The position numbers and the translations under genes are program-made. 64,000 nt of DNA from Macrostomum lignano. Its lineage: Eukaryota. The stretch spans positions 224,638-288,637 of the forward strand of contig NIVC01000762.1 in assembly GCA_002269645.1 (NCBI GenBank). Direction: 5' to 3'. This document shows, in pieces, positions 3,111-46,841 of the stretch (positions are counted from its first letter, which is position 1; the number at the start of each line of letters is the position of its first letter). The notes under the pieces were generated by a model that had not been told where the DNA came from, did not search any database, and saw only the letters and a program-made list of their open reading frames with translations.

Positions 3111-4835
3111 TTACACCAAAACTTCTTTCTCTTTGCTACCCAACAGCGGTGGCACCATTTTTTTTAGCCGGTCGCGGTAAACTCTCATCTTCTCTCTTGC
3201 AGCAAAAGCAGGGTTGGAGGCGTTGACTTTCGGCAGGGCCAAACCAAACCTTCTGAACATCTCCAGCAGCTCATTCTCACTGGCAACATCTACTAAATCA
3301 AGCGCGTTTGCATTGATGAGCTGAATTAGATACTCACGGTAGTGCCTGTCGCATATACCCGGCTTGTTATGAGAAACTTTTTCGGTACAAGGATATATAC
3401 CAATCAACTTTCGTTCTATCTTCAAATCAGGAAGCTCACAAGCTTTGTTAACTTTTGAGCATGCTTCGCTTACTTTAATCTTATTTCTCCTCAACAAATC
3501 AAGTAGAGTCGTCTGTTTTACTTGCTTCAAATAAAAGTAGCACTGGCGCTGGTGGTGCACATGAATTCCTTTAATTTGGCAGCCTTCGTGAGGTCTCAAC
3601 TGAGGGCTTCGACAAAATGGACAGAATGAATGCCCACATCTGCAGTGAAACACAGGAACTCCAGATTTGGACACTCGTTGGTAGCAAAGAATGCAGACTG
3701 GGCAAACCAAATCAAAAGTCAGAAGCTCCATCATCTGATCGTGCAGGTTTGCGTCAGTAGGCGAGAAGCCTTGCTTTTGAGCAGCTATGTGCATTTCGTT
3801 ATAATCTCCTTTTTGTTGAATACCTGCTGCATAATCCCGATAACTGCTGCAGCCCATCCGATAGTGATCAACCCAGAACCCGAAGCATTTCTTGCAGGCA
3901 TTCCGTTTGCAAACTTTGCAGTAACTTTCGCACTGCCGAGTGTCCATTTTCGGTAGTCCACCATTCCTATGAGGACAATAACCATTCGAAGTGTTTAATG
4001 GAACTGTCGAGGCATCTTTAGAGGCTTTTGATTTTGTCCCTTTCTTTCCTGCGGCTTCGACCACTTCCCAACCTTCGTCGCTATTTTTGCTTGAATTTTC
4101 TTCAAGGTGCACCACTGCATACTCCACAGTGTCAGAGCCAAGCAAATCCGCCATTTCCATCAGCTGCATCCTCATGAAATCCCGACTGTCTTCATCATCG
4201 CACACATCCTTGCAGACAGGGCACTGAATTCTGCTGCTTTTCAGCTCAAGAAGAAATTTCCGAAAACACTCTGGACACATTTGGCACTCGCATGCTGCCA
4301 TGGCAACAAGTTTGTGACGCGGTAAATCATTCGAACAGCGGCTGCACTTGCGACGCAATTGGCTCAGCAGAGCATCGTCTTCGAACGCTAGGACACCACA
4401 CGACTCAATCGCAACTGCAAGGTCTGATTCGGAAAACTCGTTAAACTTGGGCATGCTTTTGACAGCCAGAACTCTCTCTGCTACCCAGTCTTCCACTCTG
4501 AGCTGCAAAGCCAGGTTTTGAGCTCTATCGGACCATTCGATAGAATCGCTTCCTGCTGCTCCGACTGCAGCACTGGCGGCTGATGTGGCTGCGGAGGTCA
4601 GCATGGACGCAGCAGCAGCGGCTTCACTGCGAGCGACTGCGCCTCCTTTAGTGGTTCCACCACTGAGTTCGGTAGTCTGTGCGCAAGCAGAGCAAATTCC
4701 AAGCCCAGTTTCTGGCTGCGATGGAGCCGGGTTCACCAGCGTGCAGTGATTGCAGACCCAGCTACCGTTGCTTTGAGAATTGTTTTCTTGGAAATTTTGA
4801 GAGGTTACATTTGAAGGAACATTTGTTGCATGATG
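3111..4835 (-). CDS. HOIP-like paralog 2, 3' part: NZF-like + degenerate catalytically dead RBR-LDD (type C), in frame with 4836-6830 across a TGA
   Basis: Open for 574 codons directly after the TGA at 4836-4838. RING1 reads CSRC..MAACECQMCPEC..CPVC. RING2 reads CPVC..SKSGVPVFHCRC..FCPFC..HVHH..C and lacks the GGC-x-H motif. LDD-like GICDRHYREYLIQLIN. Confidence 0.75.
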   Translation of the reverse strand, partial: HHATNVPSNVTSQNFQENNSQSNGSWVCNHCTLVNPAPSQPETGLGICSACAQTTELSGGTTKGGAVARSEAAAAASMLTSAATSAASAAVGAAGSDSIEWSDRAQNLALQLRVEDWVAERVLAVKSMPKFNEFSESDLAVAIESCGVLAFEDDALLSQLRRKCSRCSNDLPRHKLVAMAACECQMCPECFRKFLLELKSSRIQCPVCKDVCDDEDSRDFMRMQLMEMADLLGSDTVEYAVVHLEENSSKNSDEGWEVVEAAGKKGTKSKASKDASTVPLNTSNGYCPHRNGGLPKMDTRQCESYCKVCKRNACKKCFGFWVDHYRMGCSSYRDYAAGIQQKGDYNEMHIAAQKQGFSPTDANLHDQMMELLTFDLVCPVCILCYQRVSKSGVPVFHCRCGHSFCPFCRSPQLRPHEGCQIKGIHVHHQRQCYFYLKQVKQTTLLDLLRRNKIKVSEACSKVNKACELPDLKIERKLIGIYPCTEKVSHNKPGICDRHYREYLIQLINANALDLVDVASENELLEMFRRFGLALPKVNASNPAFAAREKMRVYRDRLKKMVPPLLGSKEKEVLV

Positions 4836-6830
4836 TCAATGTAGTTGCCGATTCTGTTCTTTCTTCTGTTGCTCTCTCAGCTGTTGCTCTCTCTGCTGTT
4901 GCTCTCTCTGCTGTTGCTCTCTCTGCTGTTGCTCTCTCTGCTGTTGCTCTCTCTGCTGTTGCTCTCTCTGCTGTTGCTCTCTCTGCTGTTGCTCTCTCTG
5001 CTGTTGCTCTCTCTGCTGTTTCTCTCTCAGCTGTCGCTCTCTCAGCTGTTGCTCTCTCAGCTGTTGCTCTCTCTGCTGTTGCTCTCTCTGCTGTTGCTCT
5101 CTCTGCTGTTGCTCTCTCTGATGTTGCTCTCTCTGCTGTTTCTCTCTCAGCTGTCGCTCTCTCAGCTGTTGCTCTCTCTGCTGTTGCTCTCTCTGCTGTT
5201 GCTCTCTCTGCTGCTGCTCTCTCTGCTGCTGCTCTCTCTGCTGTTCAGCCCGCTGTGGATTCATCTGCTGCTCAAAAAAATCATTTGCTTTATCTTGACC
5301 TTCAATTTTACCTCGCTGAGTCAAGAGCAAAAACAAATTCTGCTGCTCTCTCAGCGTCTTCTTGTTGCCATGCATGGCGCTGGCCAGGGCCTCCTTGAGG
5401 TGCGACTCGCACAGACCCGACTCGACCACCGGCCTCCCGCACTCCCCGTCCTCCAAACCGCCTCCTGACGTCTCCTTCTGCTCCTGGACGCTGCACCGAC
5501 CTACAGCGCCCGCCACTCCGACAAGCTCCAGCTGAACGCCCCGCTCCAGCGCCGCCTGCCGAACCTTCTCCAACGGCCAGTCTCTGAACGTCTCCACGCA
5601 CTCCGACCCGTGGTGGCAGTGGAGTCCCTTGTTCCCGCCGCAGCACTCCTGTCGAACAAACAGACTGCCGCAGTCGCTGCAGAACTCCGCCTTGCACTGC
5701 CTGCACGTCAGGTGAAGACAGCCGCCTCGAGACAGCTCGAACTGGAAGCCGCACTTTGGACACGAGCTGCCCCGACTCTCCAGGAACTGCGCCAGTCCGC
5801 GCTCGCTCAAGTCCGTCTGCTGACGCCACTCGCCGAACTGCTGGCAGCTCACGCCTCGGTGCCGCTCGTGCCACGCCTTGCCGCACTTCCTGCACGTCTC
5901 CTTGCCGCAGTGCGGGCACCGCACCTGCCTGTCGTGGTGCTCCGACACCTCGAAACCGTTCGAGCACCCGCTGCACCAGCAGAAGTTGTCCGTCAGCTTC
6001 AGTCGCCAGTCGCGCAGTCTCTCATCCAGCTTCTTCATCACTGCGGGCTTCAGCTGGCCCGCCAGCAACCTCTGCAGCAGCGGAAAGTACTCGCACGACG
6101 TGTCCGTCAGAGCTCGGTCGTCCAGCTTGTCGCACACCGGACACGTCAGCACCGACACCGAGCTGTCGTGCATCAGGCGCACCTCGATCTGCTGGCACAG
6201 ACAGTCGCTGCAGACCTCGCAGTCGCACAGGGGAACCTCGACCAGCTTCTTGTCGTCGATGCACACTGGGCACTCTTTGCTAGCAGTAGTTTCCATTGGA
6301 GCTGCTTTAGAGTTTCGAATAGAAATAGCTCTGAGCGGTCGAATTTGATCCCACTGCAGCACACCTTCAGTAGCCCTGTGAGTAGGGTAAAACGGCTTCG
6401 AACTCCTAGTGAAAATGTCATTCGCTTCTACAGCACCTGGGTCCCGCTCTTCGCCTATGCATCTTCGAAGACCCAATGTGCTGCTTGTCTCGCTCATCCG
6501 GGTCCTCGAAAATCGCTGAGACATACTAATGCTCAAAGGTTCGGCTGCTGCATCCGTTTCGGCGTCTCGCAAACTCCACGAAGCACGGGATTCATCGTCA
6601 AAGCTTTGCCTGTGCTGTTGGTTTTTACGAGGCTTTGGCTTGGGTGCCCGTTCAAGATGCTGTGCTCTCTGTTGTCGCTGGTGCAGATCCAGAAGCTCCT
6701 CACAAGAGACTGACTTGGAACACACGCTGCAGATAATGCGACTTTTAGGATTAGAAGTGTCGCATACAGACGAGTTAATAAATGTGCAGTGCTGGCACTG
6801 CCACTCAATGTTTTCACTAGCTGATGCCAT
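4836..6830 (-). CDS. HOIP-like paralog 2, 5' part: NZF-like, RING1-IBR-RING2-LDD (cassette A), Gln/Arg/Glu repeat linker; ends at an in-frame TGA
   Basis: 664-aa ORF with WQCQHCTFIN, CPVC..CDCEVCSDC, FCWCSGC..CPHCGKETCRKC, CPKC..GGCLHLTCRQC..FCSDC..CC..HCHH..C, FRDW, RCSVQEQKE..DGECG..LCESH. These match the HOIP RBR-LDD motif order. Confidence 0.88.
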   Translation of the reverse strand: MASASENIEWQCQHCTFINSSVCDTSNPKSRIICSVCSKSVSCEELLDLHQRQQRAQHLERAPKPKPRKNQQHRQSFDDESRASWSLRDAETDAAAEPLSISMSQRFSRTRMSETSSTLGLRRCIGEERDPGAVEANDIFTRSSKPFYPTHRATEGVLQWDQIRPLRAISIRNSKAAPMETTASKECPVCIDDKKLVEVPLCDCEVCSDCLCQQIEVRLMHDSSVSVLTCPVCDKLDDRALTDTSCEYFPLLQRLLAGQLKPAVMKKLDERLRDWRLKLTDNFCWCSGCSNGFEVSEHHDRQVRCPHCGKETCRKCGKAWHERHRGVSCQQFGEWRQQTDLSERGLAQFLESRGSSCPKCGFQFELSRGGCLHLTCRQCKAEFCSDCGSLFVRQECCGGNKGLHCHHGSECVETFRDWPLEKVRQAALERGVQLELVGVAGAVGRCSVQEQKETSGGGLEDGECGRPVVESGLCESHLKEALASAMHGNKKTLREQQNLFLLLTQRGKIEGQDKANDFFEQQMNPQRAEQQREQQQREQQQREQQQREQQQREQQLRERQLREKQQREQHQREQQQREQQQREQQQREQQLREQQLRERQLREKQQREQQQREQQQREQQQREQQQREQQQREQQQREQQQREQQQREQQLREQQKKEQNRQLH
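4860..5245 (-). repeat. Coding 15-bp tandem repeat (QREQQ) linker in paralog 2
   Basis: (ctgttgctctctctg)n on the + strand, about 25 units. Confidence 0.9.
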
Positions 6831-8809: not shown

Positions 8810-8978
8810 TTGTCAGGGGGGATTCCCCTCTTGGTAGTTCGACGGACGGCAAAATGGCTCTGTATTCCTACTGCTACGAGCGTAATTTGATACAGAGTAA
8901 TCCTATTCATGAAAATGTCTGATTCGAAAATAGGGAACATCTCTAAAAAATATTAGAAGAGTGTACCGTCATGGTGAG

Positions 8979-11900
8979 TCACTTCACAAGTGGCTTCTGC
9001 TGAGCAATCAAAGCTCGCAGGGCAGCCACGTTGTTCTCGCCGACTCCTGAAAAGTCAATTCCTTCCCGTAGACAGGCTCCCCTGAGCTCGCCTTCGTCCA
9101 TCACACTGACGGGATCCAGCTTTTGTTTGTTCACCAGCGATACAAGGTACTCAATGTAGTGCTTCTCGCACAGGTTCGCCTGGCCCGGTTTCACATCGAC
9201 ACCGCACGGCTCATCCTTCAAACCGTTTGCAACTTCCTTCTGCTCCATCACTTCGCATTTGTCAACTGGGTTCTCAGCTTCGCTCTCGAACTCCACCTTG
9301 TGTAAATTCAGCAGCCGCTGCAGCCGGTCCACTCCAAAGTCTCTAAGGTAAAAGAGACAGTCTCTCGGGTGTTTGCAACTCAGGCCTCTGCCGTGAATAA
9401 TTGTATGCTCGCCGTCACAGTCTGCGCAGAATTTAAAGCGGCACATTCGGCAGGTAAAGTGCAGAGAACCACCCTTTGCTAAGGCGTACTGGAAGCGACA
9501 ATTAGGACATTCAATGCCATTGGCTTGTAGAAAAAATCCAACACCTTTCTCCTGATATTCTGGATCATTGTCCATCAGCCACTTCTCAAACTGGTCGCAG
9601 TCAATGCCTTCATGCTGATCTTTCCACGGCTTTTTGCACTCTTTGCAGGTAAAGGCCTCACAATTAGGACATTGGAACTTTAAACCGATCATGATGTCTC
9701 CGAGAACCATTCCAAAGCCACAGCTGCTGCACCAGCGAAAGTTTGGATCTCGAAAAAGATTCCACTCTGTGATCTTCTTCTCGACAAGATCAACAACGTT
9801 TTCATCAAATTTATATTCAGATTGTTTAAAGCCTTGTATCTGTTTGATCTGTGGCAGAAGAATTCCGAAATGGCTTTCAAACTCCTCTATTTGATTTGCA
9901 TTGGGTACTTGGCACATTGGGCAACAAAGATCTGTGACATGCCCGCCACCTGTCATAGCCGTTGCTACGAAGTTACGAAAGCACTCGTGGCACAACTCAC
10001 ACTGGCATGAAGCCATTGGTAATAACTTGTGCTTTGGAAACTTATCAAAACAGCAACTGCACTCGCACTGCAAGTAACTTTTCACGAAGTCAACATAATC
10101 GCACCTGTTATTGCTGCCCTTTGCAGCCTCTGCAAGGTCGTAAAGATCGCGGCCCTTAAACTCGCTGTTTTGCATAAGCTGAAAAAGTATTTTAGCATCG
10201 CTAATCTTTCTTAAGTCGAACTCTACCATCAGAGAGCGAAGGGAGGCCTCACTTTCATTCACTTTTTCATTTTCAGCTTGAATATTAGTTTTGAAATCAC
10301 CGTCAAAAAGCTGTTTCTCTCTTTGCTTTTGCTCTCCCACACGTTGCTCTGTCCAACTGAGTTCGGTAGTCTGTGCGCAAGCAGAGCAAATTCCAAGCCT
10401 AGTTTCTGGCTGCGACGGAGCCGGGTTGACCAGCGTGCAGTGCTTGCAGACCCAGCTGCCATCACGTTGAGATGTGTTTTTTTGGAAATTTGGAGAGGCT
10501 ACTTTTGACGGAACATTTGTTGCATGATTTTCATGTAGTTGCCGATTCTGTTCTTTCTGCTGCTCTCTCAGCTGTCGCTCTCTCTCACGTTGCTCTCTCT
10601 GCTGGTGCTCTCTCTGGTGTTGCTCTCGCTCAAGTAGCTCTTTCTCGCGCTCTCTCTCCCATTGCTCTCTCTGCTGCTGCTGAAGGCTACTGAGATATTT
10701 TCTGTGCTGCTCATAAAGATCATTTGGCCTATCTTCACCTTCAAATTGACTCTGCACATTCACATCCAAAAAGAAATTCTCTTGCTGGTTCTGCTGCTGC
10801 TCTCTCAGCTTCTTCTTCTTGCCCCGCATGGCGCTGGCCAGGGCTTCCTTGAGGTGCGACTCGCACAGACCCGCCTCCATCACCGGCCTCCCGCACTCCG
10901 AGTCCTCCAGACCGCCTCCTGACGTCTCCTTCTGCTCCTGGACGCTGCACCGACCTCCAGCGCCCGCCACTCCGACAAGCTCCAGCTCAACGCCCCGATC
11001 CAGCGCCGTCTGCCGAACCTTCTCCAACGGCCAGTCTCTGAACGTCTCCACGCACTCCGACCCGTGGTGGCAGTGCAGTCCCTTGTTCCCGCCGCAGCAC
11101 TCCTGTCGAACAAACAGACTGCCGCAGTCGCTGCAGAACTCTGCCTTGCACTGCCTGCACGTCAGGTGAAGACAGCCGCCTCGAGACAGCTCGAACTGGA
11201 AGCCGCACTTTGGACACGAGCTGCCCCGACTCTCCAGGAACTGCGCCAGTCCGCGCTCGCTCAAGTCCGTCTGCTGACGCCACTCGCCGAACTGCTGGCA
11301 GCTCACGCCTCGGTGCCGCTCGTGCCACGCCTTGCCGCACTTCCTGCACGTCTCCTTGCCGCAGTGCGGGCACCGCACCTGCCTGTCGTGGTGCTCCGAC
11401 ACCTCGAAACCGTTCGAGCACCCGCTGCACCAGCAGAAGTTGTCCGTCAGCTTCAGTCGCCAGTCGCGCAGTCTCTCATCCAGCTTCTTCATCACTGCGG
11501 GCTTCAGCTGGCCCGCCAGCAACCTCTGCAGCAGCGGAAACTCGCACGACGTGTCCGTCAGAGCTCGGTCGTCCAGCTTGTCGCACACCGGACACGTCAG
11601 CACCGACACCGAGCTGTCGTGCATCAGGCGCACCTCGATCTGCTGGCACAGACAGTCGCTGCAGACCTCGCAGCCGCACAGGGGAACCTCGACCAGCTTC
11701 TTGTCGTCGGTGCACACCGGGCACTCTTTGCTAACAGTAGTTTTCGTTGGAGCTGCTTTAGAGTTTCGAACAGAAATTGTTGTGAGTGACGATTTTTTAA
11801 CTGGCCGATTTTGCTTATGATGCAGCATACCTCGAGTAGCACTTTGAGTAGGGTAAAACGGCTTCAAACTCCTAGTGAAAATGTCATCCGCTTCTACAGC

Positions 11901-12296
11901 GTCCGGGTCATGCTCTTCGCCTATGCGTCTTCGAAGACCCGAGGAGCTGCTTGTCTCGCTCATCCGTGTCCTCGAAAGTCGCTGAAACATACCAATGCTG
12001 AAAGGTTCGGCTGCTGCATCCGTTTCGGGGTCTCGCAAACTCCACGAATCACGGACTGCATCGTGAGAACTTTGTTCATGGTGTTGATCTTTACGAAGCT
12101 TTGGCTTGGGTGCCCGTTCAAGATGCTGTGCTCTCTGCTGTCGCTGGTTCAGATCCAGAAGCTCCTGACAAGAGACTGACTTGGAACACACGCTGCAGAT
12201 GATGCGGCTTTTAGGATTGGAAGTGTCGCACATTGCCGAGTTAATAAATGTGCAGTGCTGGCATTGCCACTCAATGTTTTGACTAGCTGATGCCAT
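8979..12296 (-). CDS. HOIP-like paralog 3: tandem double-RBR protein (NZF, intact RBR-LDD A, QRE linker, NZF, HOIP-derived RBR-LDD with catalytic Cys->Ser)
   Basis: Uninterrupted 1105-aa ORF. The first RING2 reads GGCLHL. The second reads GGSLHF (codon TCT at 9465-9467 versus TGT at 29635-29637 in the canonical gene). Confidence 0.9.
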   Translation of the reverse strand: MASASQNIEWQCQHCTFINSAMCDTSNPKSRIICSVCSKSVSCQELLDLNQRQQRAQHLERAPKPKLRKDQHHEQSSHDAVRDSWSLRDPETDAAAEPFSIGMFQRLSRTRMSETSSSSGLRRRIGEEHDPDAVEADDIFTRSLKPFYPTQSATRGMLHHKQNRPVKKSSLTTISVRNSKAAPTKTTVSKECPVCTDDKKLVEVPLCGCEVCSDCLCQQIEVRLMHDSSVSVLTCPVCDKLDDRALTDTSCEFPLLQRLLAGQLKPAVMKKLDERLRDWRLKLTDNFCWCSGCSNGFEVSEHHDRQVRCPHCGKETCRKCGKAWHERHRGVSCQQFGEWRQQTDLSERGLAQFLESRGSSCPKCGFQFELSRGGCLHLTCRQCKAEFCSDCGSLFVRQECCGGNKGLHCHHGSECVETFRDWPLEKVRQTALDRGVELELVGVAGAGGRCSVQEQKETSGGGLEDSECGRPVMEAGLCESHLKEALASAMRGKKKKLREQQQNQQENFFLDVNVQSQFEGEDRPNDLYEQHRKYLSSLQQQQREQWEREREKELLEREQHQREHQQREQRERERQLREQQKEQNRQLHENHATNVPSKVASPNFQKNTSQRDGSWVCKHCTLVNPAPSQPETRLGICSACAQTTELSWTEQRVGEQKQREKQLFDGDFKTNIQAENEKVNESEASLRSLMVEFDLRKISDAKILFQLMQNSEFKGRDLYDLAEAAKGSNNRCDYVDFVKSYLQCECSCCFDKFPKHKLLPMASCQCELCHECFRNFVATAMTGGGHVTDLCCPMCQVPNANQIEEFESHFGILLPQIKQIQGFKQSEYKFDENVVDLVEKKITEWNLFRDPNFRWCSSCGFGMVLGDIMIGLKFQCPNCEAFTCKECKKPWKDQHEGIDCDQFEKWLMDNDPEYQEKGVGFFLQANGIECPNCRFQYALAKGGSLHFTCRMCRFKFCADCDGEHTIIHGRGLSCKHPRDCLFYLRDFGVDRLQRLLNLHKVEFESEAENPVDKCEVMEQKEVANGLKDEPCGVDVKPGQANLCEKHYIEYLVSLVNKQKLDPVSVMDEGELRGACLREGIDFSGVGENNVAALRALIAQQKPLVK

Positions 12297-13014
12297 GCGA
12301 GTTGGTGCTGCAAGCCTACAGGCCTTTGCTGCAATGAGTTCATTTAAACAAAATGTAGCTAATTTAGAATTAAAAGGGTCATCAGCAAAAGAAAAATGTT
12401 GGAAAAAGTATTTAATTATGAATGTCTAAAATTAAGAGCAACTCAAAAATATCATTGCAATATGATATAATCTAGCCATATAAGATCATACTCATTAAAC
12501 GTACTTGTAGATACTATTAGATTATACATGAAGATACTTTTTAAGCTGAAAAAGCGCCGGATATTTACTTTTTTCAGTAGCAAACTTAGCTTTTCCTGCT
12601 GCTATCTAATTCAATAGCGAGTGGCATATCTAGTGATTTTAGCAGCTTTAAGTAAGCGTGGCAACTAGGCACTAGTTAAATATTTTAATAAATTTACTAT
12701 ATAGGTAAAACTTGAAAATAAGAAAAAATATCTAGGATTCGCAACGCAATGTGAAGACAATGGAAAGTCTCAATAGTATATTTAAAAAATGTTCAATTAT
12801 AATAAAAACGTACACACAGTGAGTACGAGCTATATACCGGTAAACACTCAGCAACCTGTCAAAGATTCCATCCCGAAACCTGTGATACAGCTTATCAAAT
12901 CTCAGCTTTAAGTGACGCAATCTACACTAAGCCCGAGCAGTTTTCGTCTGAACTTTGTGTGAAGCAGTTTGCGTCACAATTGGCCCCAGCTGAGGCTGGT
13001 GAGGAGAGATTGCG

Positions 13015-14664: not shown

Positions 14665-16497
14665 TTACACCATAGCTTCTTCGTCTTCGCTAAGTGGCAA
14701 CATTTCCTTCAGCCGTTCGCGGTAAATACTCGTTTTTTCTCTCGCAGCAGAAGCAGGGTAGGAGGCTTTGACTTTTGGCAGGGCCAAACCAAACCTTCTG
14801 AACATCTCCAGCAACTCATTCTCACTGGCAACATCCACCAAATCGAGTTTGTTTGCATTGATGAGCTGAATTAGACACTCACGGTAGTGCCTGTCGCATA
14901 TACCTGGGTTTTTATAAGTAACTTTTTCGGCACAAGGACAGACTTTCAGCTTTCCGTCCATCTTCAAATCGGGAAGCTCACAACCTTTGCCAAACTTTGA
15001 GCATACGTCGCTCACTTTGACCTTATTTCTCCTCAGCAAATCAAGTAGAGTCGTCTGTTTTACATGCTTCAAATTAAAGAAGCACTGGCGATAGTGGTGC
15101 ACATGAAGTCCTTTAATTTGGCAGTCTTCGTGAGGTCCAATCTGACGGCTTTGACAAAATGGACAGAATGAATTTCTGCAACTACAGTGAAACACAAAAA
15201 CGCCAGACTTGGACACACGCTGATAGCAATGACTACATTTTGGGCAAACCAAATGAAAAGTCAGAAGCTTCATCATCTGATCGTACAGCCTTTTGTCAGT
15301 AGACGAGTGACCTTGGTTCTGAGCAGCTATGTGCATTTTGTTATAATATTTTTGATGAATACCTTCTGCATGCTTCCGATAACTGCCGCAGTCCATCCGA
15401 TGGTGAACAACCCAGAAGCCGAAGCATTTCTTGCAGACATCCTGTTTGCAAAGTTTGCAGTGACTGTCGGATTGTCAAGTGCCCATTTTCGGTAGTCCAA
15501 TATTTCCATGGGGACAATAACCATTCGAAGTAACAACTGGAACTGTCGAGACATGTTTTGAAGATTTTGAGTTTTTTTTCCTTTCCTGTCTGGGGCTTCG
15601 ACCACTTCCCAACCTTCGTCGATATTTTGGCTTGAATTACCTCCAAGCACAAGGACTTCAAGGCGTGCCACTGCATACTCCACAGTGTCAGAGCCAAGCA
15701 CATCCTCCATTTCCATCAGCTGCATCCTCATGAAATCCAGACTGTCTTCATCGTCGCACGCCACCTGGCAGACAGGGCACTGAATTCTGCTGCTTTTCAG
15801 ATCAACAAGGAATTTCTCAAAGCACTCTGGACACATTTGGCACTCGCAAGCTGCCATGGCAACAAGTTTGTGACGTGGCAACTCATTCGAACAGCGGCTG
15901 CACTTTCGAAGCAGTTGGCTCATCAGACGATCAGAGCATCGTCTTCGAACGCCAGCCCGCCACACGACTCAATCGCCACTGCGAGGTCCGATTCGGAAAA
16001 AAAGTTTAAACTTGGGCATACTTTTGACAACCAAAACTCTCTCTGCTACCCAGTCTTCCACTCTGAGATGCAAAGCCAGGTTTTGAGCTCTATCGGACCA
16101 TTCGATAGAATCGCTTCCTGCCGCTCCGACTGCAGCACGGCGGCTGCTGTGGCTGCGGAGGTCAGCATGGACGCTGCAGCAGCGGCTTCACTGCGAGCGA
16201 CTGCGCCTCCTTTAGTGGTTCCACCACTGAGTTCGGTAGTCTGTGCGCAAGCAGAGCAAATCCCAAGCCCAGTTTCTGGCTGCGATGGAGCCGGGTTCAC
16301 CAGCGTGCAGTGATTGCAGACCCACCTGCCGTTGCTTTGAGAATTGTTTTCTTGGAAATTTTGAGAGGTTACATTTGAAGGAACATTTGTTGCATGATGT
16401 CAATGTAGTTGCCGATTCTGTTCTTGCTGTTGCTCTCTCTGCTGCTGCTCTCTTTGCTGTTGCTCACTCTGCTGCTGCTCACTCTGCTGCTGCTCAC

Positions 16498-16532
<35 letters not shown>

Positions 16533-19500
16533 CTCTCTCGCGTTGTTCTCTCTGCTGTTGCTCTTGCTGCTTTTTCTCTCTCTCACGTTGCTCTCTCTGC
16601 TGTTGCTCTCTCAGCTGTTGCTCTCTCTGCTGTTGCTCTCTCAGCTGTTGCTCTCTCTGCTGTTGCTCTCTTTTCTGCTGCTCTCTCTGCTGTTGCTCTC
16701 TCTGCTGTTGCTCTCTCTGCTGTTGCTCTCTCTGCTGCTGCTCTCTCTGCTGCTGCTCTTTCTGCTGTTGCTCTCTCTGCTGTTGCTCTCTCTGCTGTTT
16801 CTCTCTCTGCTTTCGCTCTCTCTCACGTTGCTCTCTCTGCTGTTTCTCTCTCTGTTTTTGTTCTTTCTGCTGTTTCTCTCTCTGCTGTTGCTCTCTCTGC
16901 AGCTGTTTTTCTCTCTGCTATTGTTCTTTCTGCTGTTGCTCTCTCTGCTTTCGCTCTCTCTCACGTTGCTCTCTCTGCTGTTTCTCTCTGTTTTTGTTCT
17001 TTCTGCTGTTTCTCTCTCTGCTGTTGCTCTCTCTGCAGCTGTTTCTCTCTCTGCTTTTGTTCTTTCTGCTGTTGCTCTCTCTGCTTTCGCTCTCTCTCAC
17101 GTTGCTCTCTATGCTTTTGCTCTCTCTGCTGTTGCTCTCTCTGCTTTCGCTCTCCTTCGTTGGCGGAGCCGTCCGTCCATGCCGTGATCCCGATCTCCAG
17201 GGCCGCTCTGGCTTGTTCTTCTGCTGCTGCTCTCTGCAAAAAATCGCTTCCTGCCGCTCCGACTGCAGCACTGGCGGCTGCTGTGGCTGCGGAGGTCAGC
17301 ATGGACGCTGCAGCAGCGGCTTCACTGTGAACGACTGCGCCTCCTTTAGTGGCGCTACCACTGAGTTTGGTAATGTATGCGCAAGCAGAGCAAATTACAA
17401 GCCCAGTTTTTTGCTGCGATGGAGCCGGGTTCACCAACGTGCAGTGATTGCAGATCCAGCTGCCTTTGCTTTGAGAATTGTTTTCTTGGAAATTTTGAGA
17501 GGTTACATTTGAAGGAACATTTGTTGCATGATGTCAATGTAGTTGCCGATTCTGTTCTTGCTGTTGCTCTCTCTGCTGCTGCTCTCTTTGCTGTTGCTCT
17601 CTCTGCTGCTGCTCTCTTTGCTGTTGCTCTCTCTGCTGTTGCTCTCTCTGCTGTTTCTCTCTCTGCTTTCGCTCTCTCTCACGTTGCTCTCTCTGCTGTT
17701 TCTCTCTCTGTTTTTGTTCTTTCTGCTGTTTCTCTCTCTGCTGTTGCTCTCTCTGCAGCTGTTTCTCTCTCTGCTTTTGTTCTTTCTGCTGTTGCTCTCT
17801 CTGCTTTCGCTCTCTCTCACGTTGCTCTCTATGCTTTTGCTCTCTCTGCTGTTGCTCTCTCTGCTTTCGCTCTCTCTGCTTTCGCTCTCCTTCGTTGGCG
17901 GAGCCGTCCGTCCATGCCGTGATCCCGATCTCCAGGGCCGCTCTGGCTTGTTCTTCTGCTGCTGCTCTCTGCAAAAAATCGCTTCCTGCCGCTCCGACTG
18001 CAGCACTGGCGGCTGCTGTGGCTGCGGAGGTCAGCATGGACGCTGCAGCAGCGGCTTCACTGTGAACGACTGTGCCTCCTTTAGTGGCGCTACCACTGAG
18101 TTTGGTAATGTATGCGCATGCAGAGCAAATTACAAGCCCAGTTTTTTGCTGCGATGGAGCCGGGTTCACCAACGTGCAGTGATTGCAGATCCAGCTGCCT
18201 TTGCTTTGAGAATTGTTTTCTTGGAAATTTTGAGAGGTTACATTTGAAGGAACATTCGTTGCATGATCTCCATGTAGTTGCCGATTCTGTTCTTGCTGTT
18301 GCTCTCTCTGCTGCTGCTCTCTCTGCTGTTGCTCACTCTGCTGCTGCTCACTCTGCTGCTGCTCACTCTGCTGCTGCTCTCTCTGCTGTTGCTCTCTTTG
18401 CTGTTGCTCTCTCTGCTGCTGCTCTCTCTCACGTTGCTCTCTCTGCTGCTGCTCTCTTTGCTGTTGCTCTCTCTGCTGCTGCTCTCTTTGCTGTTGCTCA
18501 CTCTGCTGCTTCTCTCTCTGCTGCTGCTCTCTCTGCTGCTGCTCTCTTTGCAGTTTCTCTCTCTGTTGCTGCTCTCTCTGCGGTTGCTCTCTCTGCTGTT
18601 GCTCTCTCAGCTGGTCTCTCAGCTGTTCTTCTCTCTCCTGTTGCTCTCTCAGCTGGTCTTTCAGCTGTTCTTCTCTCTCCTGTTGCTCTCTCAGCTGGTC
18701 TTTCAGCTGTTCTTCTCTCTCCTGTTGCTCTCTCAGCTGGTCTCTCAGCTGTTCTTCTCTCTCCTGTTGCTCTCTCAGCTGGTCTTTCAGCTGTTCTTCT
18801 CTCTCCTGTTGCTCTCTCAGCTGGTCTTTCAGCTGTTCTTCTCTCTCCTGTTGCTCTCTCAGCTGGTCTCTCAGCTGTTCTTCTCTCTCCTGTTGCTCTC
18901 TCAGCTGGTCTTTCAGCTGTTCTTCTCTCTCCTGTTGCTCTCTCAGCTGGTCTCTCAGCTGTTCTTCTCTCTCCTGTTGCTCTCTCAGCTGGTCTCTCAG
19001 CTGTTCTTCTCTCTCCTGTTCCTCTCTCTGGTGCTGGTCGCTCTGTTGCTGCTCCAACATCTGCAGCAGTCTCGCCGCCTCATCATTACCTAGCTGAGAC
19101 TCCAGCTCGTACACAAGAATCATGGTCGTGTTTCGAGCTACATGGTCTCCAGACCAGGCCACTCCACACACCGGACACTCCAGCTGCCCTGGCATTCCGG
19201 ACAGGAAGCTGCAGAAACAGCCACAGCACAGCTCGCACTCGCACGTCGCCATGTGAAACAGCTTGTGACGCGGCATCTGCTTTGAGCACTTGCAACACTG
19301 GCTTCTCAAGTGCGCTAACAGAGCTACCACATCATCGCAAGCCTTCCCACAAGACTGGATGGAGTCAATGAGGTCAGTATCGGAGAAGTCCTTGAACTCC
19401 CTAAGCTGCTTCACTTCCTGGAGTCGCTCGGTCAGCCAGGTGTCGCAGCGACGCTGGGCCTGAGGCGGCGGCGGCAGCACCTCGACTCGGTGATTCTCAA

Positions 19501-19627
19501 CGCTGTGCCAGTTGGTGTGGCAGGACTCGCAGATCAGTTGGAAGCCGCAGCCGGCCTCCAGGCACCGGATTGAGGCGCCTGGGCGGCCGCAGATGAGGCA
19601 GCGCTCGGCGAGCACTCGGTGAGCCAT
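14665..19627 (-). pseudogene. HOIP-like paralog 4: B-box, RING1, QRE repeats, three NZF modules and a dead RBR-LDD (type C); multiply disrupted
   Basis: ATG at 19627 (MAHRVLAERCLICG..CESCHTNWH). In-frame TGA at 17534-17536 and 16400-16402, TAG at 16918. Frameshifts near 16980, 16135, 16010, 15925 (8-bp insertion) and 15575 relative to the intact copy at 3111-4835. Confidence 0.75.
18595..19030 (-). repeat. Coding 42-bp tandem repeat (EQQEREEQL[RK]DQLR) in paralog 4
   Basis: About 10 near-perfect 14-aa units, followed by 15-bp QREQQ units. Confidence 0.88.
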
Positions 19628-20989
19628 GCGTTGCACAACCAAGTTTGCTTGTTGGTCAGGAGCGCTGCTGAAATTGAAAAAGGTTAGGAGCTTTGTACTC
19701 AATCGAGAGCAACTGTGGATTGACAAGTTTGAGTAATCTAGCTACGAGAGCATAAACTAAAGAGAAACAAAGTGATCTCTAGAGGGTTTTTTCGAGAAAT
19801 ATTCAGGTAGGGTGTTGATTTCTAGGCGATATGAAGAATTAATAAGTAAATAATAAATATTAAAGTCAATAAATATTTCAACGCATTTAGCACTTTGAGA
19901 TGAATTGTCGAGTTTATTTGGCAACGAAAAAGAACAAAGTTTTGGTATTCCCACTGGGGAAACCAAAGTCAGCTGTTTACCCTAAAGGCTAAGGAGCAAT
20001 TTAAACCATCTGCAATACAAAATCATCTCATTCAGTATGATACGGTAAGTGCTGTAGTTGTAAACCAGAAAAGTGCTAAAAAATCTACAAATGCCAATTA
20101 GACTACAAACTCACTAATCATTAAAGTTCTGCCTAAGCTCGCCTAGCCTCAACACCCAGCCCTAGCACAGTGGCGCAGGTCACGTCCTCCGTATTATCTG
20201 AGAGTTGCACTACTGTATTCGTGCCTGTCCATGCTTTTAACCTGTTAATGTGCATTGATTGTTTTCTACCTTTACCAAAACTATTGATTTTTCACGACCC
20301 TTTCATTACGATTTAGTTTTTTTAAAAACTGAGTTTTGATACCGCATCACACAGTGAACCATAATTTGAAGTTGAGAAAAGAACAAAAACAAAAACGTTT
20401 CGTACCTTATAAATTAACACTTCAGCAAAACGCTTTAACAGCAAAACATTAAAATCTGGAGTATCTTAATAATGAAAAACAAAGACTATATGGATACAGC
20501 ACAGCTATCTTTGTCTTGAATCATACATTTAAATTTAAGGTAAATATCACGTTTATAAAATATAATACCATTGTATAAAATCACAGAGAATATTTTGGTA
20601 TATTCTGTGTTGAAAAACGGAATAATTGAACTTTTTGTTTACAAAAACAACTCAGCATTGAATCACTCAAATTTGGTTGGAACAAATCCATCACATTTCT
20701 CAATGCAGTGTTGGAAGCCCTGTACTCGACAGGAGTTCTAGTCGAGTCCTGCGTAGACTGTAGGCCTTCCCTAGATTTCGATCTGAAAGGGTGAAGTTTT
20801 TCGCGCTAAGAAATATTGTCTTACTCTACATGACACAATTAAATAAAACTTCTATGGTGTAATCTATTGTCCGCCCTACTCGTCAAGTTGCTATACAGCA
20901 ACAATCAATGAAAATGCATAATCAAACAAAAGCTGAGGATACGACCAGCCAATAATAGGAAGCAGTGGTGTACACCGCAAAACACTGAA

Positions 20990-22345: not shown

Positions 22346-22431
22346 CTGGATAGGGGAATTTATTCGTCAAGACGTTAGCGACATCTCTTTACTACGTGCA
22401 AAGACAAAATATACCTTCTAGAATAGCTTAC

Positions 22432-23541
22432 TGAGGTTTGCTTTCGCCTTGAAGATGCGACGTTAGCAACGCCTACACGGGGCTTCTTGTTGTCGCCACG
22501 CATGGCGCTGGCCAGGGCCTCTTTGAGGTGCGACTCGCACAGACCCGCCTCGACCACCGGCCTTCCGCACTTCCCGTCCTCCAGACCGCCTCCTGACGTC
22601 TCCTTCTGCTCCTGGACGCTGCACCGACCTCCAGCGCCCGCCACTCCGACAAGCTCCAGCTGAACGCCCCGCTCCAGCGCCGTCTGCCGAACCTTCTCCA
22701 ACGGCCAGTCTCTGAACGTCTCCACGCACTCCGACCCGTGGTGGCAGTGCAGTCCCTTGTTCCCGCCGCAGCACTCCTGTCGAACAAACAGACTGCCGCA
22801 GTCGCTGCAGAACTCCGCCTTGCACTGCCTGCACGTCAGGTGAAGACAGCCGCCTCGAGACAGCTCGAACTGGAAGCCGCACTTTGGACACGAGCTGCCC
22901 CGACTCTCCAGGAACTGCGCCAGTCCGCGCTCGCTCAAGTCCGTCTGCTGACGCCACTCGCCGAACTGCTGGCAGCTCACGCCTCGGTGCCGCTCGTGCC
23001 ACGCCTTGCCGCACTTCCTGCACGTCTCCTTGCCGCAGTGCGGGCACCGCACCTGCCTGTCGTGGTGCTCCGACACCTCGAAACCGTTCGAGCACCCGCT
23101 GCACCAGCAGAAGTTGTCCGTCAGCTTCAGTCGCCAGTCGCGCAGTCTCTCATCCAGCTTCTTCATCACTGCGGGCTTCAGCTGGCCCGCCAGCAGCCTC
23201 CGAAGCAGCGGAAAGTACTCGCACGAAGTGTCCGTCAGAGCTCGGTCGTCCAGCTCGTCGCACACCGGACACGTCAGCACCGACACCGAGCTGTCGTTCA
23301 TCAGGCGCACCTCGATCTGCTGGCACAGACAGTCGCTGCAGACCTCGCAGCCGCACAGGGGAACTTCGACCAGCTTCTTCTCGTCGGTGCACACCGGGCA
23401 CTCTGCTGATGTCTGCAGCTCTGAGAGGTCAGTGGACTTTCCGCACACTGAGCAGATCAGCCTTCTGTGCAGTTGGCGACCCTGTGCTCCATCATTGATG
23501 AAGGTACAGTGCGGACACTGCCACTGCGATCGGCGTGGCAT
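22432..23541 (-). CDS. HOIP-like paralog 5, exon 1: NZF-like + RBR-LDD cassette A
   Basis: ATG at 23541 (MPRRSQWQCPHCTFIN). Intact GGCLHL and FRDW. Phase-0 donor TCA|GTAAGC at 22431. Confidence 0.82.
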
Positions 23542-29145: not shown

Positions 29146-32100
29146 TCACTTCACAAGTGGCTTCTGCTGAGCAATCAAAGCTCGCAGGGTTGCCACGTTG
29201 TTCTCGCCGACTCCCGAGCAGTCAATTCGTTCACGCAGACACGCTCCCCTGAGCTCGCCTTCGTCCATCACACTGACGGGATCCAGCTTTTGCTTGTTCA
29301 CCAGCGATACAAGGTACTCAATGTAGTGCTTCTCGCACAGGTTCGCCTGGCCCGGTTTAACGTCGACACCGCACGGCTCATCCTTCAAACTGCTTCCAAC
29401 TTCCTTTTGCTCCATCACTTCGCATTTGTCAACTGGGTTCTCAGCTTCGCTCTCGAACTCCACCTTGTGTAAATGCAGCAGCTGCTGGAGCCGGTCCACT
29501 CCAAAGTCTCTAAGGTAGAAGAGACAGTCTCTCGGGTGTTTGCAACCCCCAAGGCCTCTGCCTTGAATGATTGTATACTCGCCGTCACAGCCTGCGCAGA
29601 ATTGAAAGCGGCACATTCGGCAGGTAAAGTGCAGACAACCACCCTTTGCTAGGGCGTACTGGAAGCCACAATTAGGACATTCAATGCCATTGGCTTGTAG
29701 AAAAAATCCAACACCTTTCTCCTGATATTCTGGATCATTGTCCATCAGCCACTTCCCAAACTGGTCGCAGTCAATGCCCTCATGCTGATCTTTCCACGGC
29801 TTTTTGCACTCTTTGCAGGTAAAGGCCTTGCAAATAGGACATTGGAACTTCAAACCGAACATGATTTCTCCGAGAACCATTCCAAAGCCACAAATGCTGT
29901 TGCTGCACCAGCGAAAGTTTGGATCTCGAATAAGATTCCACTCTGTGATCTTTTGCTCCACAATCTCAACAACGTTTTCATCAAATGTATATTCAGATTG
30001 TTGAAGGCCTTGTATCTGTTTGATCTGTGGCAGAAGAATTCCAAAATGGCTTTCCAGCTCCTCTATTTGATTTGCATTGGGAAATTGGCACATTGGGCAA
30101 TGAAGATCTGTGACATGCCCGCCACCTGTCATAGTTGTTGTTACGAAGTTACGGAAGCACTCATGGCACAACTCGCACTGGCATGAAGCCATTGGCAATA
30201 ACTTGTGCTTCGGAAACTCTCCAGTACAGATACTGCACTCGCACTGCAAGAAACTTTTCACGAAGTCGACGTAATCGCACCTGTTATTGCTGCTCTTTGC
30301 AGCCTCCGCAAGATCATGAAGATCGCAGCCCTTGAACTCACTGTTTTTCATAAGCTGAAAAAGTGTTTGTGCATCGCTAATCTTTCTTAAGTCGAACTCT
30401 CCCATCAGACAGTGGAGGGAGGCCTCACTTCCATTCATTCTGTCGAACTTAGGTGGCTCCTGGCCCTCCTTGCAGAACAAAAATTGTGCGAAATCTCTAA
30501 AGACCCGTTCGTTTTCGGCTTGATAAAAATTAGTAAAATCACCATCGCCCTGAAAATCAAGGTTTACCTCATGGGCTGACTGCAGCAACTCTGGGCAGTT
30601 CTCCGCAATCCAAGCGACCTTTGCTTTGTGACGTTGGGCGCACAGCTGAATAGCCGCTTCAAGGTCGCATGTGTTGTCCAGCACAGCAGATGCGACATCG
30701 TCAAATGAGGGTCGCACACCTGCATTATCATCCTGCAACACTTTCGCTACCTCGCAACCGACCTGCTCAATCAGTGCCGGCCATTTTTCTGCCACCCAGG
30801 CCTTGAATCTAGCCTCCGACTGGGCGCCATCATCAGCAGTTGCCACCAAATACAGCTGGCCCAACCGACCATCGAAGCCTGAAAATTCGATATCTTGTAT
30901 AAGCTTCAACAGCTGTCTGTTTGCAGCCTCCTCCATCTCTGGATTTCGCTGACGGGCTACTGGCTTGACTTCAAAGGGAAGCTTGATACCGTCACTGCCA
31001 CCGAGTTCGCGTGGAGTTTGGCAAATTGCGCAAGACTTTGCAGTAATGGGATTAAACATTGTGCATGCCGAGCAAGACCAATCTTGGTCATTGGACAGCG
31101 GCTCTTGTTTAGGCTTCAGTGGTGCGCGATCTGGAATCTCCACCTGCTTTGGAGCTTCTGGCTGTTTTATTGCTGGCTCCTGCTGCTGTTTTTTGACTTT
31201 TGCAATAATTTCCTTATCGTCGCAAGTCATCGAACAAACTGAGCATATGACGCGGCTACTTTTTATTAGCTTCGTCTCGGCTATAGGATTTAGCGCCGTA
31301 CAAACGGGGCAAGGCCAACTGTTCGCTTCCGTTGGTTCGGTAGGCACCGGCCTTGGAGGCAACTGCTGCTGCGGAGGGGGTGGAGCTGTCTCAGGTTTCG
31401 GCACAATTGATTTAGACAGACGTGGCTTGGGCTTCGGTATCGATTGTGGCTGCTGAGGCGGTTGCGGAGCTGGCAGCGATGGCTGCGGAGGCAGCTGATC
31501 TGAGCAGTCAAAAAACTCTTCTTCAGGCGTCGGCGGTCGACGAATGTCGCCAGCTGGCTTCGAAAAGCTGCGCTCCTCGCTAATAGGCTTTAACGACATC
31601 ATGAACTCATTGAGTTTCATTACACGGGCATCTGACTCGCTGGTATCGCTAGGCTGCTGTCGCGGTGGCTGTCGCGGTGGCTGCTGTGGCTGTTGTTGAG
31701 GTAAAACATATCGCGGTTTTTGTCCAGGATACTGCGGCGGTGGAACCCTCGGAGGCGGCACAGCAACAGCAGGTGCAGCAGCAGCAGCAGCAGCAACAGG
31801 CGCAGGTTGCTGCTGCTGTTGAGCTAGATTTGGACTATTATTACCCATGAGACCAATTTGAGACTTATAACTAACCGCTTGACTGTTTGACACAACCTTT
31901 CTAACTCCAGAGTTCAACTGCACACTGGCAGGTCCCACCACGCCCGGTGGCACCAACCGCACAGCGTTGGATCCGACGGCGTCGCTGATTTTACGTCGAT
32001 TATGACTGCGCCGGTCCGGATGCCCGTGCCAGCGTCCGTCGCAACTCTCGCACAGGCGCCGCTTGGAGCAGTGCTTCTCCTGGCAGGCCACCGTTGCCGC

Positions 32101-32712
32101 GGCCTCGCCGCACAGGTCGCAATTCTGGTTGAGCTTGCGCTGCATTGCGTTTACTCTATCCTGCATCCCGGAGGGTCCGGCACGCTTAAGAGCTGGCTGT
32201 TCGTTCTTGGCGATAAGCTTAGTACCCAACGGATGGTTATCCTTAATGATGAGGCTCAGCTCTTCAGCCAGCAGGTACAAGTCTACAAGAGTATCAGCAA
32301 GGGCTTCGTTCGACAATCGTTCAGATGTAATGGTGAAATTCTGATCGTTGCGCTCGAAACCAATGCGTTCTAATAGTTGGTCAACGCCCGAGAGGCACTG
32401 GCAGAATGAGGCCTGCACCCTGTGCCAATCCGGTGGTCGGTCTCTCTCTGGACGCAGCAGGTGCTTGAGCTTGTTGCGCAGAAATAAACAGGACCGCTTG
32501 ACGTCTTCGGCTGATTTTTTGTCACCCGACATGGCGGCGCGAGCATCCACTAGCTTGTACTTTTGGTTGATCTGCATTTGCAGCAGTTCGCCATAGTCTA
32601 GCTGGCGACTATCTCGGATGGCCTCAAGCAGATTAGATCTGGCATTGCGAACTGAAACATCGCCAAGACCTCCGGAGTTCGGAATCGGGGGCAACGGCCT
32701 CGATTGGGCCAT
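29146..32712 (-). CDS. RNF31: Full-length HOIP (RNF31), catalytic subunit of LUBAC; intronless ORF
   Basis: 1188 aa with a PUB-like N-terminus (RPPDWHRV..LLERIGF..TLVDLYLLAEEL), B-box (LCESCDGRWHGHPDRRSH), two NZFs and a UBA region. RING1, IBR, RING2 GGCLHF, HPRDCLFYLRD and LDD EQKEV..DEPCG..LCEKHY.EYLVSLVN are closely colinear with human HOIP motifs. Confidence 0.93.
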   Translation of the reverse strand: MAQSRPLPPIPNSGGLGDVSVRNARSNLLEAIRDSRQLDYGELLQMQINQKYKLVDARAAMSGDKKSAEDVKRSCLFLRNKLKHLLRPERDRPPDWHRVQASFCQCLSGVDQLLERIGFERNDQNFTITSERLSNEALADTLVDLYLLAEELSLIIKDNHPLGTKLIAKNEQPALKRAGPSGMQDRVNAMQRKLNQNCDLCGEAAATVACQEKHCSKRRLCESCDGRWHGHPDRRSHNRRKISDAVGSNAVRLVPPGVVGPASVQLNSGVRKVVSNSQAVSYKSQIGLMGNNSPNLAQQQQQPAPVAAAAAAAPAVAVPPPRVPPPQYPGQKPRYVLPQQQPQQPPRQPPRQQPSDTSESDARVMKLNEFMMSLKPISEERSFSKPAGDIRRPPTPEEEFFDCSDQLPPQPSLPAPQPPQQPQSIPKPKPRLSKSIVPKPETAPPPPQQQLPPRPVPTEPTEANSWPCPVCTALNPIAETKLIKSSRVICSVCSMTCDDKEIIAKVKKQQQEPAIKQPEAPKQVEIPDRAPLKPKQEPLSNDQDWSCSACTMFNPITAKSCAICQTPRELGGSDGIKLPFEVKPVARQRNPEMEEAANRQLLKLIQDIEFSGFDGRLGQLYLVATADDGAQSEARFKAWVAEKWPALIEQVGCEVAKVLQDDNAGVRPSFDDVASAVLDNTCDLEAAIQLCAQRHKAKVAWIAENCPELLQSAHEVNLDFQGDGDFTNFYQAENERVFRDFAQFLFCKEGQEPPKFDRMNGSEASLHCLMGEFDLRKISDAQTLFQLMKNSEFKGCDLHDLAEAAKSSNNRCDYVDFVKSFLQCECSICTGEFPKHKLLPMASCQCELCHECFRNFVTTTMTGGGHVTDLHCPMCQFPNANQIEELESHFGILLPQIKQIQGLQQSEYTFDENVVEIVEQKITEWNLIRDPNFRWCSNSICGFGMVLGEIMFGLKFQCPICKAFTCKECKKPWKDQHEGIDCDQFGKWLMDNDPEYQEKGVGFFLQANGIECPNCGFQYALAKGGCLHFTCRMCRFQFCAGCDGEYTIIQGRGLGGCKHPRDCLFYLRDFGVDRLQQLLHLHKVEFESEAENPVDKCEVMEQKEVGSSLKDEPCGVDVKPGQANLCEKHYIEYLVSLVNKQKLDPVSVMDEGELRGACLRERIDCSGVGENNVATLRALIAQQKPLVK

Positions 32713-38673: not shown

Positions 38674-42116
<3,443 letters not shown>

Positions 42117-46742: not shown

Positions 46743-46841
46743 AAAGAAGTGTAGTTGGGTGTGCGGAGAGGCGAGAGGGAGCAGAGGCACATTCATGCAT
46801 GTTACACAGACAAAGACGCAAGCCGCCAACTCACCCTCCAG

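Follow-up and report, generated by a model that had tools for sequence, protein, structure and literature searches.

A mosaic reading frame with two RBR units, one of them lacking the catalytic cysteine, in a tandem array of HOIP-derived genes of Macrostomum lignano

HOIP (RNF31) is usually encoded by a single-copy gene and acts with HOIL-1L in LUBAC, a complex in which two RBRs have different roles, both being catalytically active and carried by separate polypeptides that are joined through UBL-UBA contacts. In these proteins RING1 is the docking site for ubiquitin-loaded E2 (E2~Ub), and the LDD carries the acceptor-ubiquitin residues. Here we describe an open reading frame (ORF) of the flatworm Macrostomum lignano that places two RBR units in a single polypeptide, the second of them a HOIP-type RBR-LDD with serine at the catalytic position. 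This ORF ('dbl', hereafter the fusion ORF; 1105 codons, 8979..12296 on the minus strand, stop codon at 8979-8981) lies in the final 64 kb of the 288,637-bp contig NIVC01000762.1 (GCA_002269645.1, Mlig_3_7); these 64,000 nucleotides are referred to as the window, and a window position equals the record position minus 224,637. Human HOIP carrying the engineered mutation C885S folds and slowly takes ubiquitin from E2 as a dithiothreitol-resistant oxyester, but is unable to hand this ubiquitin to substrate (PMC3432797).

RBR genes derived from HOIP/RNF31 stand in tandem along the minus strand of the window. In this array the fusion ORF is a recombination product in which an RBR-A paralogue is followed by a QQQRE-repeat/NZF module, then by a junction of 94 nt and last by the 3' half of HOIP. 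We read it, with a probability of about 0.5, as encoding a predicted protein in which a non-catalytic pseudoligase module would be tethered to RBR-A, all within a recombinant mosaic ORF.

The second RBR unit and its catalytic site

As the initial annotation of the window had proposed, the ORF runs from ATG to stop without a break at correctly placed coordinates, and Pfam matches in both halves of its 1105 codons put two RBR units in one polypeptide. The second unit (RBR-B, or dblB; 9417..10061, minus strand) comprises RING1 (aa 746-795), IBR (aa 856-900) and RING2 (aa 930-960), and is followed by a full LDD (9099..9416, minus strand). Its IBR and RING2 (IBR_1, aa 925-964) score above the Pfam cut-off, and the LDD matches the whole of the PF18091 profile (1-92 of 92, 93.6 bits, aa 990-1077), giving aa 745-1077 both an RBR supradomain and an LDD of HOIP type. 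The unit aligns continuously with the human RNF31 RBR-LDD (PDB 5edv residues 6-338; E = 1e-76, about 45% identity), and because this 45%-identical match to solved HOIP structures runs from end to end, its fold can be taken as fixed.

Two full-length HOIP genes served as comparators. HOIPw, the HOIP/RNF31 orthologue of the window itself (29146..32712, minus strand), is a 1188-aa ORF annotated as the 1184-aa BOX15_Mlig021829g1 and has a B-box-like region, NZFs, a UBA and an RBR-LDD in which the catalytic cysteine is present. HOIP2, on contig NIVC01000110.1 (stretch L004), is likewise intact and full-length with the cysteine, the public model P0068 truncating its ORF at 1056 aa. The similarity claimed between the second RBR and HOIP was borne out, with 79% identity to HOIPw over 498 aligned positions and about 89% over the gap-free RBR-LDD.

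The codon TCT at 9465-9467 (minus strand), encoding Ser944, stands where HOIPw has TGT (29635-29637), as had been reported, and TGT is found in both full-length HOIP genes. In the 5edv alignment, where His887 and Asp983 confirmed the numbering, the position corresponds to human Cys885; cysteine occupies it in 10 of 10 outgroup HOIPs as well as in the two M. lignano HOIP genes. A second substitution, unmentioned in the initial annotation, lies at 9420..9422 (minus strand), where GAC encodes Asp959 in place of the invariant RING2 glycine (human G900, motif C-x-G-C), so that the C898-G900-C901 motif is broken; glycine is again present in all 10 outgroup HOIPs and both M. lignano HOIPs. The copy carries 26 private amino-acid changes, and C944S and G959D are the only ones that strike columns invariant among the 10 outgroup HOIPs. 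One of the others, G934R, restores the basic residue (Lys or Arg) typical of most HOIPs at that position. The remaining functional positions are kept, in agreement with what had been noted: the general base (human H887) is His946, the equivalents of L934/R935/D936 are Leu-Arg-Asp 984-986 (9339-9347), with the R935/D936 equivalents, counted back from D983, falling in 'YLRDW', and that of D983 is Asp1028 (9213-9215). The zinc ligands are also retained, position 944 being the sole loss among the cysteines and histidines conserved in both full-length M. lignano HOIP genes.

Because the catalytic cysteine is serine and the invariant RING2 glycine is aspartate, the second unit should be catalytically dead and, judged by these residues, would be unable to act as a thioester-forming ligase. 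We know of no natural RBR with a serine nucleophile. The alternative that Ser944 is itself a working nucleophile, making the second RBR an active ligase through an oxyester intermediate, has in its favour that His946 and the surrounding loop are kept and that HOIP C885S does load ubiquitin, if slowly (PMC3432797). The trapping of an oxyester noted in the initial annotation for such mutants does hold for human C885S, but the adduct is slow to form and untransferable to substrate (PMC3432797), and G959D strikes an invariant RING2 residue, which makes this alternative exceedingly improbable.

Homology of the fusion to HOIP begins at HOIP aa ~722, past the UBA_HOIP match (630-704). PUB, B-box, the HOIP NZF region and most of the UBA are missing, and the NZF fingers that are present are unrelated. 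As a domain, the second unit can be assigned to the HOIP RBR-LDD family; as a ligase it lacks the catalytic cysteine that defines activity, and, with these regions missing, the gene as a whole is not a HOIP orthologue.

The initial annotation had proposed a comparison of dN/dS between the second RBR and HOIP. In a three-sequence codon analysis of dblB, HOIPw and HOIP2, by which changes were assigned to branches, dblB received 28.5 synonymous and 30.5 non-synonymous changes (omega 0.26; 95% bootstrap 0.16-0.42), close to the HOIP branches: HOIPw had 16.5 and 29.5 (omega 0.44; 0.25-0.89) and HOIP2 10.0 and 10.0 (omega 0.25; 0.09-0.63). Polarising the changes with distant outgroup HOIPs was too noisy (15 vs 17 derived changes) and was replaced by this analysis. 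When the observed 32 transitions and 28 transversions were placed at random in 5000 neutral runs, 41.7 non-synonymous codon changes were expected and 26 were observed, compared to 13.2 expected and 24 observed for synonymous changes; none of the 5000 runs gave as few non-synonymous changes. The simulation also predicted 2.4 stop codons in the HOIP-derived half, where there are none (P(no stop) = 0.08). The reading frame is preserved by each of the three indels that set the copy apart from HOIP (66, 6 and 3 nt), and the divergence of the 3' untranslated region (UTR) in the HOIP-derived segment is similar to the synonymous divergence (dS). These results indicate that the second unit has not drifted neutrally, yet has lost exactly the catalytic residue.

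HOIPw has two peculiarities that set it apart from HOIP2, from dblB and from other animals: two residues are inserted within the first cysteine pair of the IBR (C-x4-C, 'CSNSIC'), and a glycine is added before 'CKHPRDC'. Its branch omega is the highest of the three.

Mosaic structure of the fusion ORF

The segments of the fusion ORF were delimited by blastn of the window against itself; all lie on the minus strand. At the N terminus an NZF-type zinc finger, read from the sequence (aa 10-37, WQCQHCTFIN...CSVC; 12186..12269), resembles a HOIP NZF. It is part of a segment, 10549-12790, that corresponds to an RBR-A gene with its 5' flank. The identity of this segment is 85% with a sibling mosaic in the window, p1, and 90% with the RBR-A gene of 667-aa type on contig NIVC01000110.1, and the RBR-A core reaches 97% with the gene at 22482-23404. 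Next comes a short charged repeat of QQQRE type (10557..10681, 15/45-nt tandem), which is common to at least four other modules of the window and was likely a substrate for recombination. This repeat and a second NZF-type finger (aa 615-640; 10377..10454) make up a repeat/NZF module (10356-10681) that occurs in five copies in the window. The module is separated from the HOIP-derived segment by a 94-nt junction (10262..10355) with no blastn match elsewhere in the window; nothing corresponds to the 17-residue junction peptide WTEQRVGEQKQREKQLF (aa 648-664, 10305-10355). At the protein level HOIP can be aligned again from ~10304 downward (DGDF...), over DNA that has strongly diverged. The last segment (8885..10261) is a copy of the HOIP 3' half, including ~95 nt of the 3' UTR (8885-8978), with 90.6% nucleotide identity to 29069-30437 and 92.7% to HOIP2.

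In the first unit, RING1 (aa 192-238), IBR (aa 288-333) and RING2 (aa 361-391) span 11124..11723, with Pfam matches above cut-off to IBR (aa 275-327) and RING2/IBR_1 (aa 358-397). It has the hallmarks of an RBR ligase, its GGCLH motif placing Cys375 (11172-11174) and His377 in the HOIP C885/H887 columns. At 31% identity to the second unit, RBR-A is a divergent paralogue and no copy of HOIP. The initial annotation had called one of the two RBR-LDDs intact; this was accurate for the RBR, where Cys375 and His377 are kept, and overstated for the LDD (10827..11123), which matches only profile positions 27-71 of 92 of PF18091 (30 bits, cut-off 23; aa 448-491). The FRD motif (R935/D936 equivalent) is kept there, the C-terminal LDD helices are unmatched, and after 'HLKEALASAM' the sequence enters the charged repeat. 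Very strong purifying selection on the RBR-A core was considered and rejected: the near-identity among copies comes with an equally low dS (0.03-0.07), and therefore reflects recent homogenisation.

A mosaic of this kind could arise in the assembly, either through a misjoin of the two halves at a repeat-rich contig end or, for the serine, through a consensus error at base 9466. The locus does lie in a tandem array within the final 64 kb of a PacBio contig, and the M. lignano line DV1 has three paralogous, near-identical genome copies, ~2% apart (1.1% in coding sequence) with many large indels, 93% of read pairs mapping to multiple loci (PMC10733133). The join, however, falls outside the shared repeats, and a repeat-mediated assembly join is unlikely because the junction has no nucleotide match elsewhere in the window. 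The difference at 9466, for its part, is a substitution and stands alongside 59 other private substitutions with a selected pattern.

A public gene model bears on the same point. P0209 (2624 aa, UniRef/MetaClust) strings together gene A, a scrambled gene, the fusion ORF and p1; its parts from the fusion ORF are 100% identical to ours, including GGSLHF, and follow the same gene order, and its part from the scrambled gene (p3) differs from the window at 3 residues. In view of these three differences P0209 probably derives from a different assembly of that line. Its agreement with the fusion ORF speaks against a wrong base or a join peculiar to this contig, although raw PacBio data may be shared between the assemblies. 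Taken with the position of the join, this leaves an artefact of assembly or base calling very unlikely. The same model qualifies the statement in the initial annotation that no double-RBR HOIP is known: no characterised one was found, but this public merged model already holds both units, serine included.

The surrounding gene array and the RBR-C paralogues

The array is a lineage-specific set of HOIP/RNF31-derived RBR genes, among which unequal recombination and gene conversion exchange segments. Its members are of four recognisable paralogue types: HOIP, a 533-aa NZF + RBR-LDD type (P0012; cysteine present, 52% identical to the second unit of the fusion), RBR-A and RBR-C. Apart from HOIPw and the fusion ORF, the minus strand of the window carries RBR-A-type genes at 25054-27450 (P0002) and 22375-23583, the scrambled gene at ~16150-19726, composed of a B-box/UBA/RING1 fragment, long QQQRE repeats and NZF modules, and a frameshifted RBR-C remnant at 14665-15965 (overlapping ORFs 15327-15965 and 14665-15396), of which the downstream piece carries a 243-aa gene annotation. 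The sibling mosaic p1 (3111..6830) consists of RBR-A, QQQRE repeat, a TGA stop (4836-4838), NZF and RBR-C.

Paralogous copies of the array were compared on stretches of contigs NIVC01000691.1 (L003) and NIVC01000110.1 (L004 and L006). Contig 110 has, in order, HOIP2, A', A, a gene of the type [B-box...repeat-NZF-RBR-C], the 667-aa RBR-A gene and the 533-aa gene; L003 starts at the [B-box...RBR-C] gene and continues in the same order. Compared with these two contigs, the fusion and p1 are extra units specific to NIVC01000762.1.

RBR-C offers a precedent for an RBR-LDD without a catalytic cysteine. Copies are found in the window (3111-4736), in L003 (519-3863 and 14777-17725) and in L006 (13643-17209). 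Depending on the copy the cysteine position is Val, Tyr or Ser, and the histidine position is Val. Four copies on three contigs have open ORFs over ~530 aligned codons and a full-length LDD match in Pfam, with pairwise dS of 0.15-0.20 and omega of 0.46-0.59, and some are annotated genes. RBR-C is 26% identical to dblB; its whole catalytic loop is remodelled, and its IBR and RING2 fall below Pfam detection. Together, these features suggest that RBR-C is an established natural pseudo-RBR family, and one that is probably more informative than the single fusion.

All modules of p1 share one frame, its RBR-C having Val for both the catalytic Cys and the His, and the TGA at 4836-4838 divides it into an RBR-A ORF and an NZF + RBR-C ORF. 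The fusion ORF is in effect a stop-free version of this design in which a HOIP copy replaces RBR-C. Three of the five repeat/NZF modules have this in-frame TGA directly after '...EQNRQLH' (4836-4838, ~16400 and 17534-17536, minus strand), whereas the codon after '...NRQLH' is GAA in the fusion ORF, GGA in one other copy of the window, and GGA or GAG on contigs 691 and 110. The distribution suggests a nonsense change that spread by duplication or conversion.

The position of the p1 stop, exactly at the module boundary, also bears on whether the halves of the fusion are expressed separately, through an internal trans-splice acceptor or promoter that would yield a stand-alone NZF + dead HOIP RBR-LDD. 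M. lignano trans-splices 39% of its genes, and ~7% of its assembled transcripts are poly-genic precursors (PMC5730564); NZF + RBR-C also occurs in genes without RBR-A on contigs 691 and 110. In the fusion, however, no stop lies between the units, so that any transcript starting upstream encodes the whole, and no in-frame ATG is found close upstream of the second NZF. Separate expression is thus quite improbable.

Elsewhere in the window, an ORF with reverse-transcriptase and RNase H domains (35176-36918, minus strand) is apparently a retrotransposon remnant with a truncated 5' end. A C2H2 zinc-finger ORF lies inside low-complexity sequence (46487-47956, plus strand). Long simple repeats also occur, and a 4-kb block at 38000-42000 is made of extreme G/T-rich simple repeats with a GC skew of up to 0.98.

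Constraint, decay and comparison with known systems

A non-catalytic pseudoligase module within the fusion is plausible but unproven, and is supported by the codon evidence and the RBR-C precedent. Because omega is 0.26 and none of the 5000 neutral runs reproduced the observed pattern, a retained non-catalytic module fits better than neutral decay. In the mechanism that we propose, purifying selection would keep RING1, IBR, the histidine, the LDD with its LRD and the zinc ligands of the second unit, which would bind E2~Ub and/or ubiquitin while tethered to the Cys/His-bearing RBR-A. By analogy with human HOIP C885S it would at most trap ubiquitin slowly, as a dead-end oxyester. The second unit may then represent an early stage of a path that the older RBR-C paralogues have already taken.

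Several observations weigh against this interpretation. No fusion, and no second HOIP 3' half, was found on the stretches of contigs 110 and 691 that were examined; dblB has a private dS of 0.08-0.11, above the homeologue divergence, yet the fusion is absent from these other two genome copies. The array is shedding genes, since three sibling modules carry the TGA and one RBR-C copy is frameshifted. With 23 non-synonymous against 4 synonymous private changes, the N-terminal linker (aa 50-185) looks unconstrained, and the RBR-A core copies (dS 0.03-0.07, omega 0.35-0.78) are too recently homogenised to inform. The HOIP-derived half has diverged unevenly: by 19% over its first 40 codons, with 23 private changes per 120 nt; by less than 3%, with almost no private changes, in aa 704-823, where the sequence nearly equals HOIP2; and with 3-6% private changes in the RING2-LDD part. 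HOIPw and HOIP2 differ by ~2% overall and by 5-10% in a 600-nt patch (29730-30330; HOIPw coding-sequence nt 2384-2983), in which the copy of the fusion nearly equals HOIP2. The pattern indicates a gene-conversion patchwork among HOIP copies, which blurs the dblB branch. The low omega could in part have been imported from functional HOIP genes in this way, and the Cys-to-Ser change could be very recent within the dblB branch.

The last of these points concern annotation and expression. No annotated gene covers 8979-12296 in GCA_002269645.1, and an exact-product look-up returned no gene on record for the 1105-aa product. A search for transcript-derived (Logan) proteins by way of the HOIP cluster found none from M. 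lignano, the members of that cluster being two NCBI proteins only. RNA-seq (StringTie/TACO) and de novo transcripts underlie the annotation of the assembly (PMC5730564). The silence of this annotation is weak negative evidence on expression, because reads from the array multi-map and the neighbouring model P0001 is visibly wrong: this 730-aa NCBI model (6860 to beyond the window start) joins two RBR-A paralogues by splicing, so that one 80-aa block appears in it twice. Public gene models in the array are unreliable, as P0001, P0068 and P0209, which merges four genes, demonstrate.

The same observations can be read as the marks of a silent recombinant relic, a young chimeric pseudogene that makes no protein and whose frame is open through youth or through refreshing by gene conversion. 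Such a relic would agree with a locus unannotated in an RNA-guided annotation and absent from two paralogous contigs, with stops and a frameshift in its siblings, with the loss of both the catalytic cysteine and the invariant glycine, with a neutral-looking linker and with the signs of conversion. It is less easily reconciled with private changes in the HOIP-derived half that are skewed to synonymous, with 1105 codons free of stops when about 2.4 would be expected in that half alone, and with three indels that all keep the frame; the private changes, moreover, by definition come from neither sequenced HOIP gene. We consider the relic possible, though on balance doubtful. The pseudoligase suggested in the initial annotation for the second unit accordingly stands in part: a HOIP copy with the Cys-to-Ser change, an omega of 0.26 and the RBR-C precedent speak for it, and an unstable, unannotated mosaic missing from two contigs speaks against it.

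If expressed, the pseudoligase module would be a natural counterpart of the HOIP C885S trap mutant, covalently joined to a second RBR that may be active, and would offer a handle on non-catalytic roles of an RBR-LDD (E2~Ub binding, linear-chain binding, acceptor-ubiquitin placement or dominant-negative action). A division of labour can also be imagined, although we think it unlikely: RBR-A, with its Cys and His but a partial LDD, would be served in cis by the complete LDD of the dead unit, which keeps the acceptor-ubiquitin residues, as a platform for acceptor ubiquitin (or E2~Ub). On that view the succession of RBR-A, repeat, NZF and a dead RBR with full LDD, which recurs in p1 with RBR-C, would mark a two-module, flatworm-specific ligase design of HOIP descent. 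If unexpressed, the fusion would be one of the usual side products of recombination within a tandem array, here in a neopolyploid genome. The array itself, in which HOIP has diversified into at least four paralogue types and both RBR-C and the fusion copy are without the active-site cysteine, is in a small way an experiment of nature on the passage from E3 ligase to pseudoenzyme.

In the literature searched, no double or tandem RBR proteins were described, and nothing relevant was found on RBR pseudoligases, Macrostomum RNF31 or the Mlig gene ids. A search with the second unit among 1.84 billion representative proteins returned 638 relatives, and only one of the best 150 was multi-unit, from a sponge. 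This HOIP-like protein of Ephydatia muelleri (P0069/P0207, KAL5514972.1) has 4-5 tandem RING1-IBR units and is multi-unit like the fusion; unlike it, the sponge protein has a single RING2, with cysteine, and no second LDD. Its repeats may reflect real exon amplification or an artefact of assembly or gene modelling.

With human HOIP/RNF31 (PDB 5edv, 4ljo) the second unit has in common the series RING1, IBR, RING2 and full LDD, together with residues equivalent to H887, L934/R935/D936 and D983; from M. lignano HOIP it was copied directly at the DNA level, as the 3' half. The fusion differs in having Ser for Cys885 and Asp for G900, and in placing this unit downstream of another RBR. The laboratory mutant HOIP C885S (Stieglitz et al. 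2012, PMC3432797) has the same change at the same position, but was engineered as a single point mutation into a fragment that is wild type elsewhere, whereas in the fusion the change is natural and comes with 25 other private changes and a second RBR. Like LUBAC, the fusion holds two RBRs together; in contrast to LUBAC, the link is covalent, one of the two appears dead, and neither is HOIL-1-like. The RBR-C paralogues are similar in having a HOIP-derived RBR-LDD after the same QQQRE-repeat/NZF module, with the catalytic cysteine lost and the ORFs kept, but they are far more diverged, have lost the histidine as well and, on the other contigs, are unfused to RBR-A.

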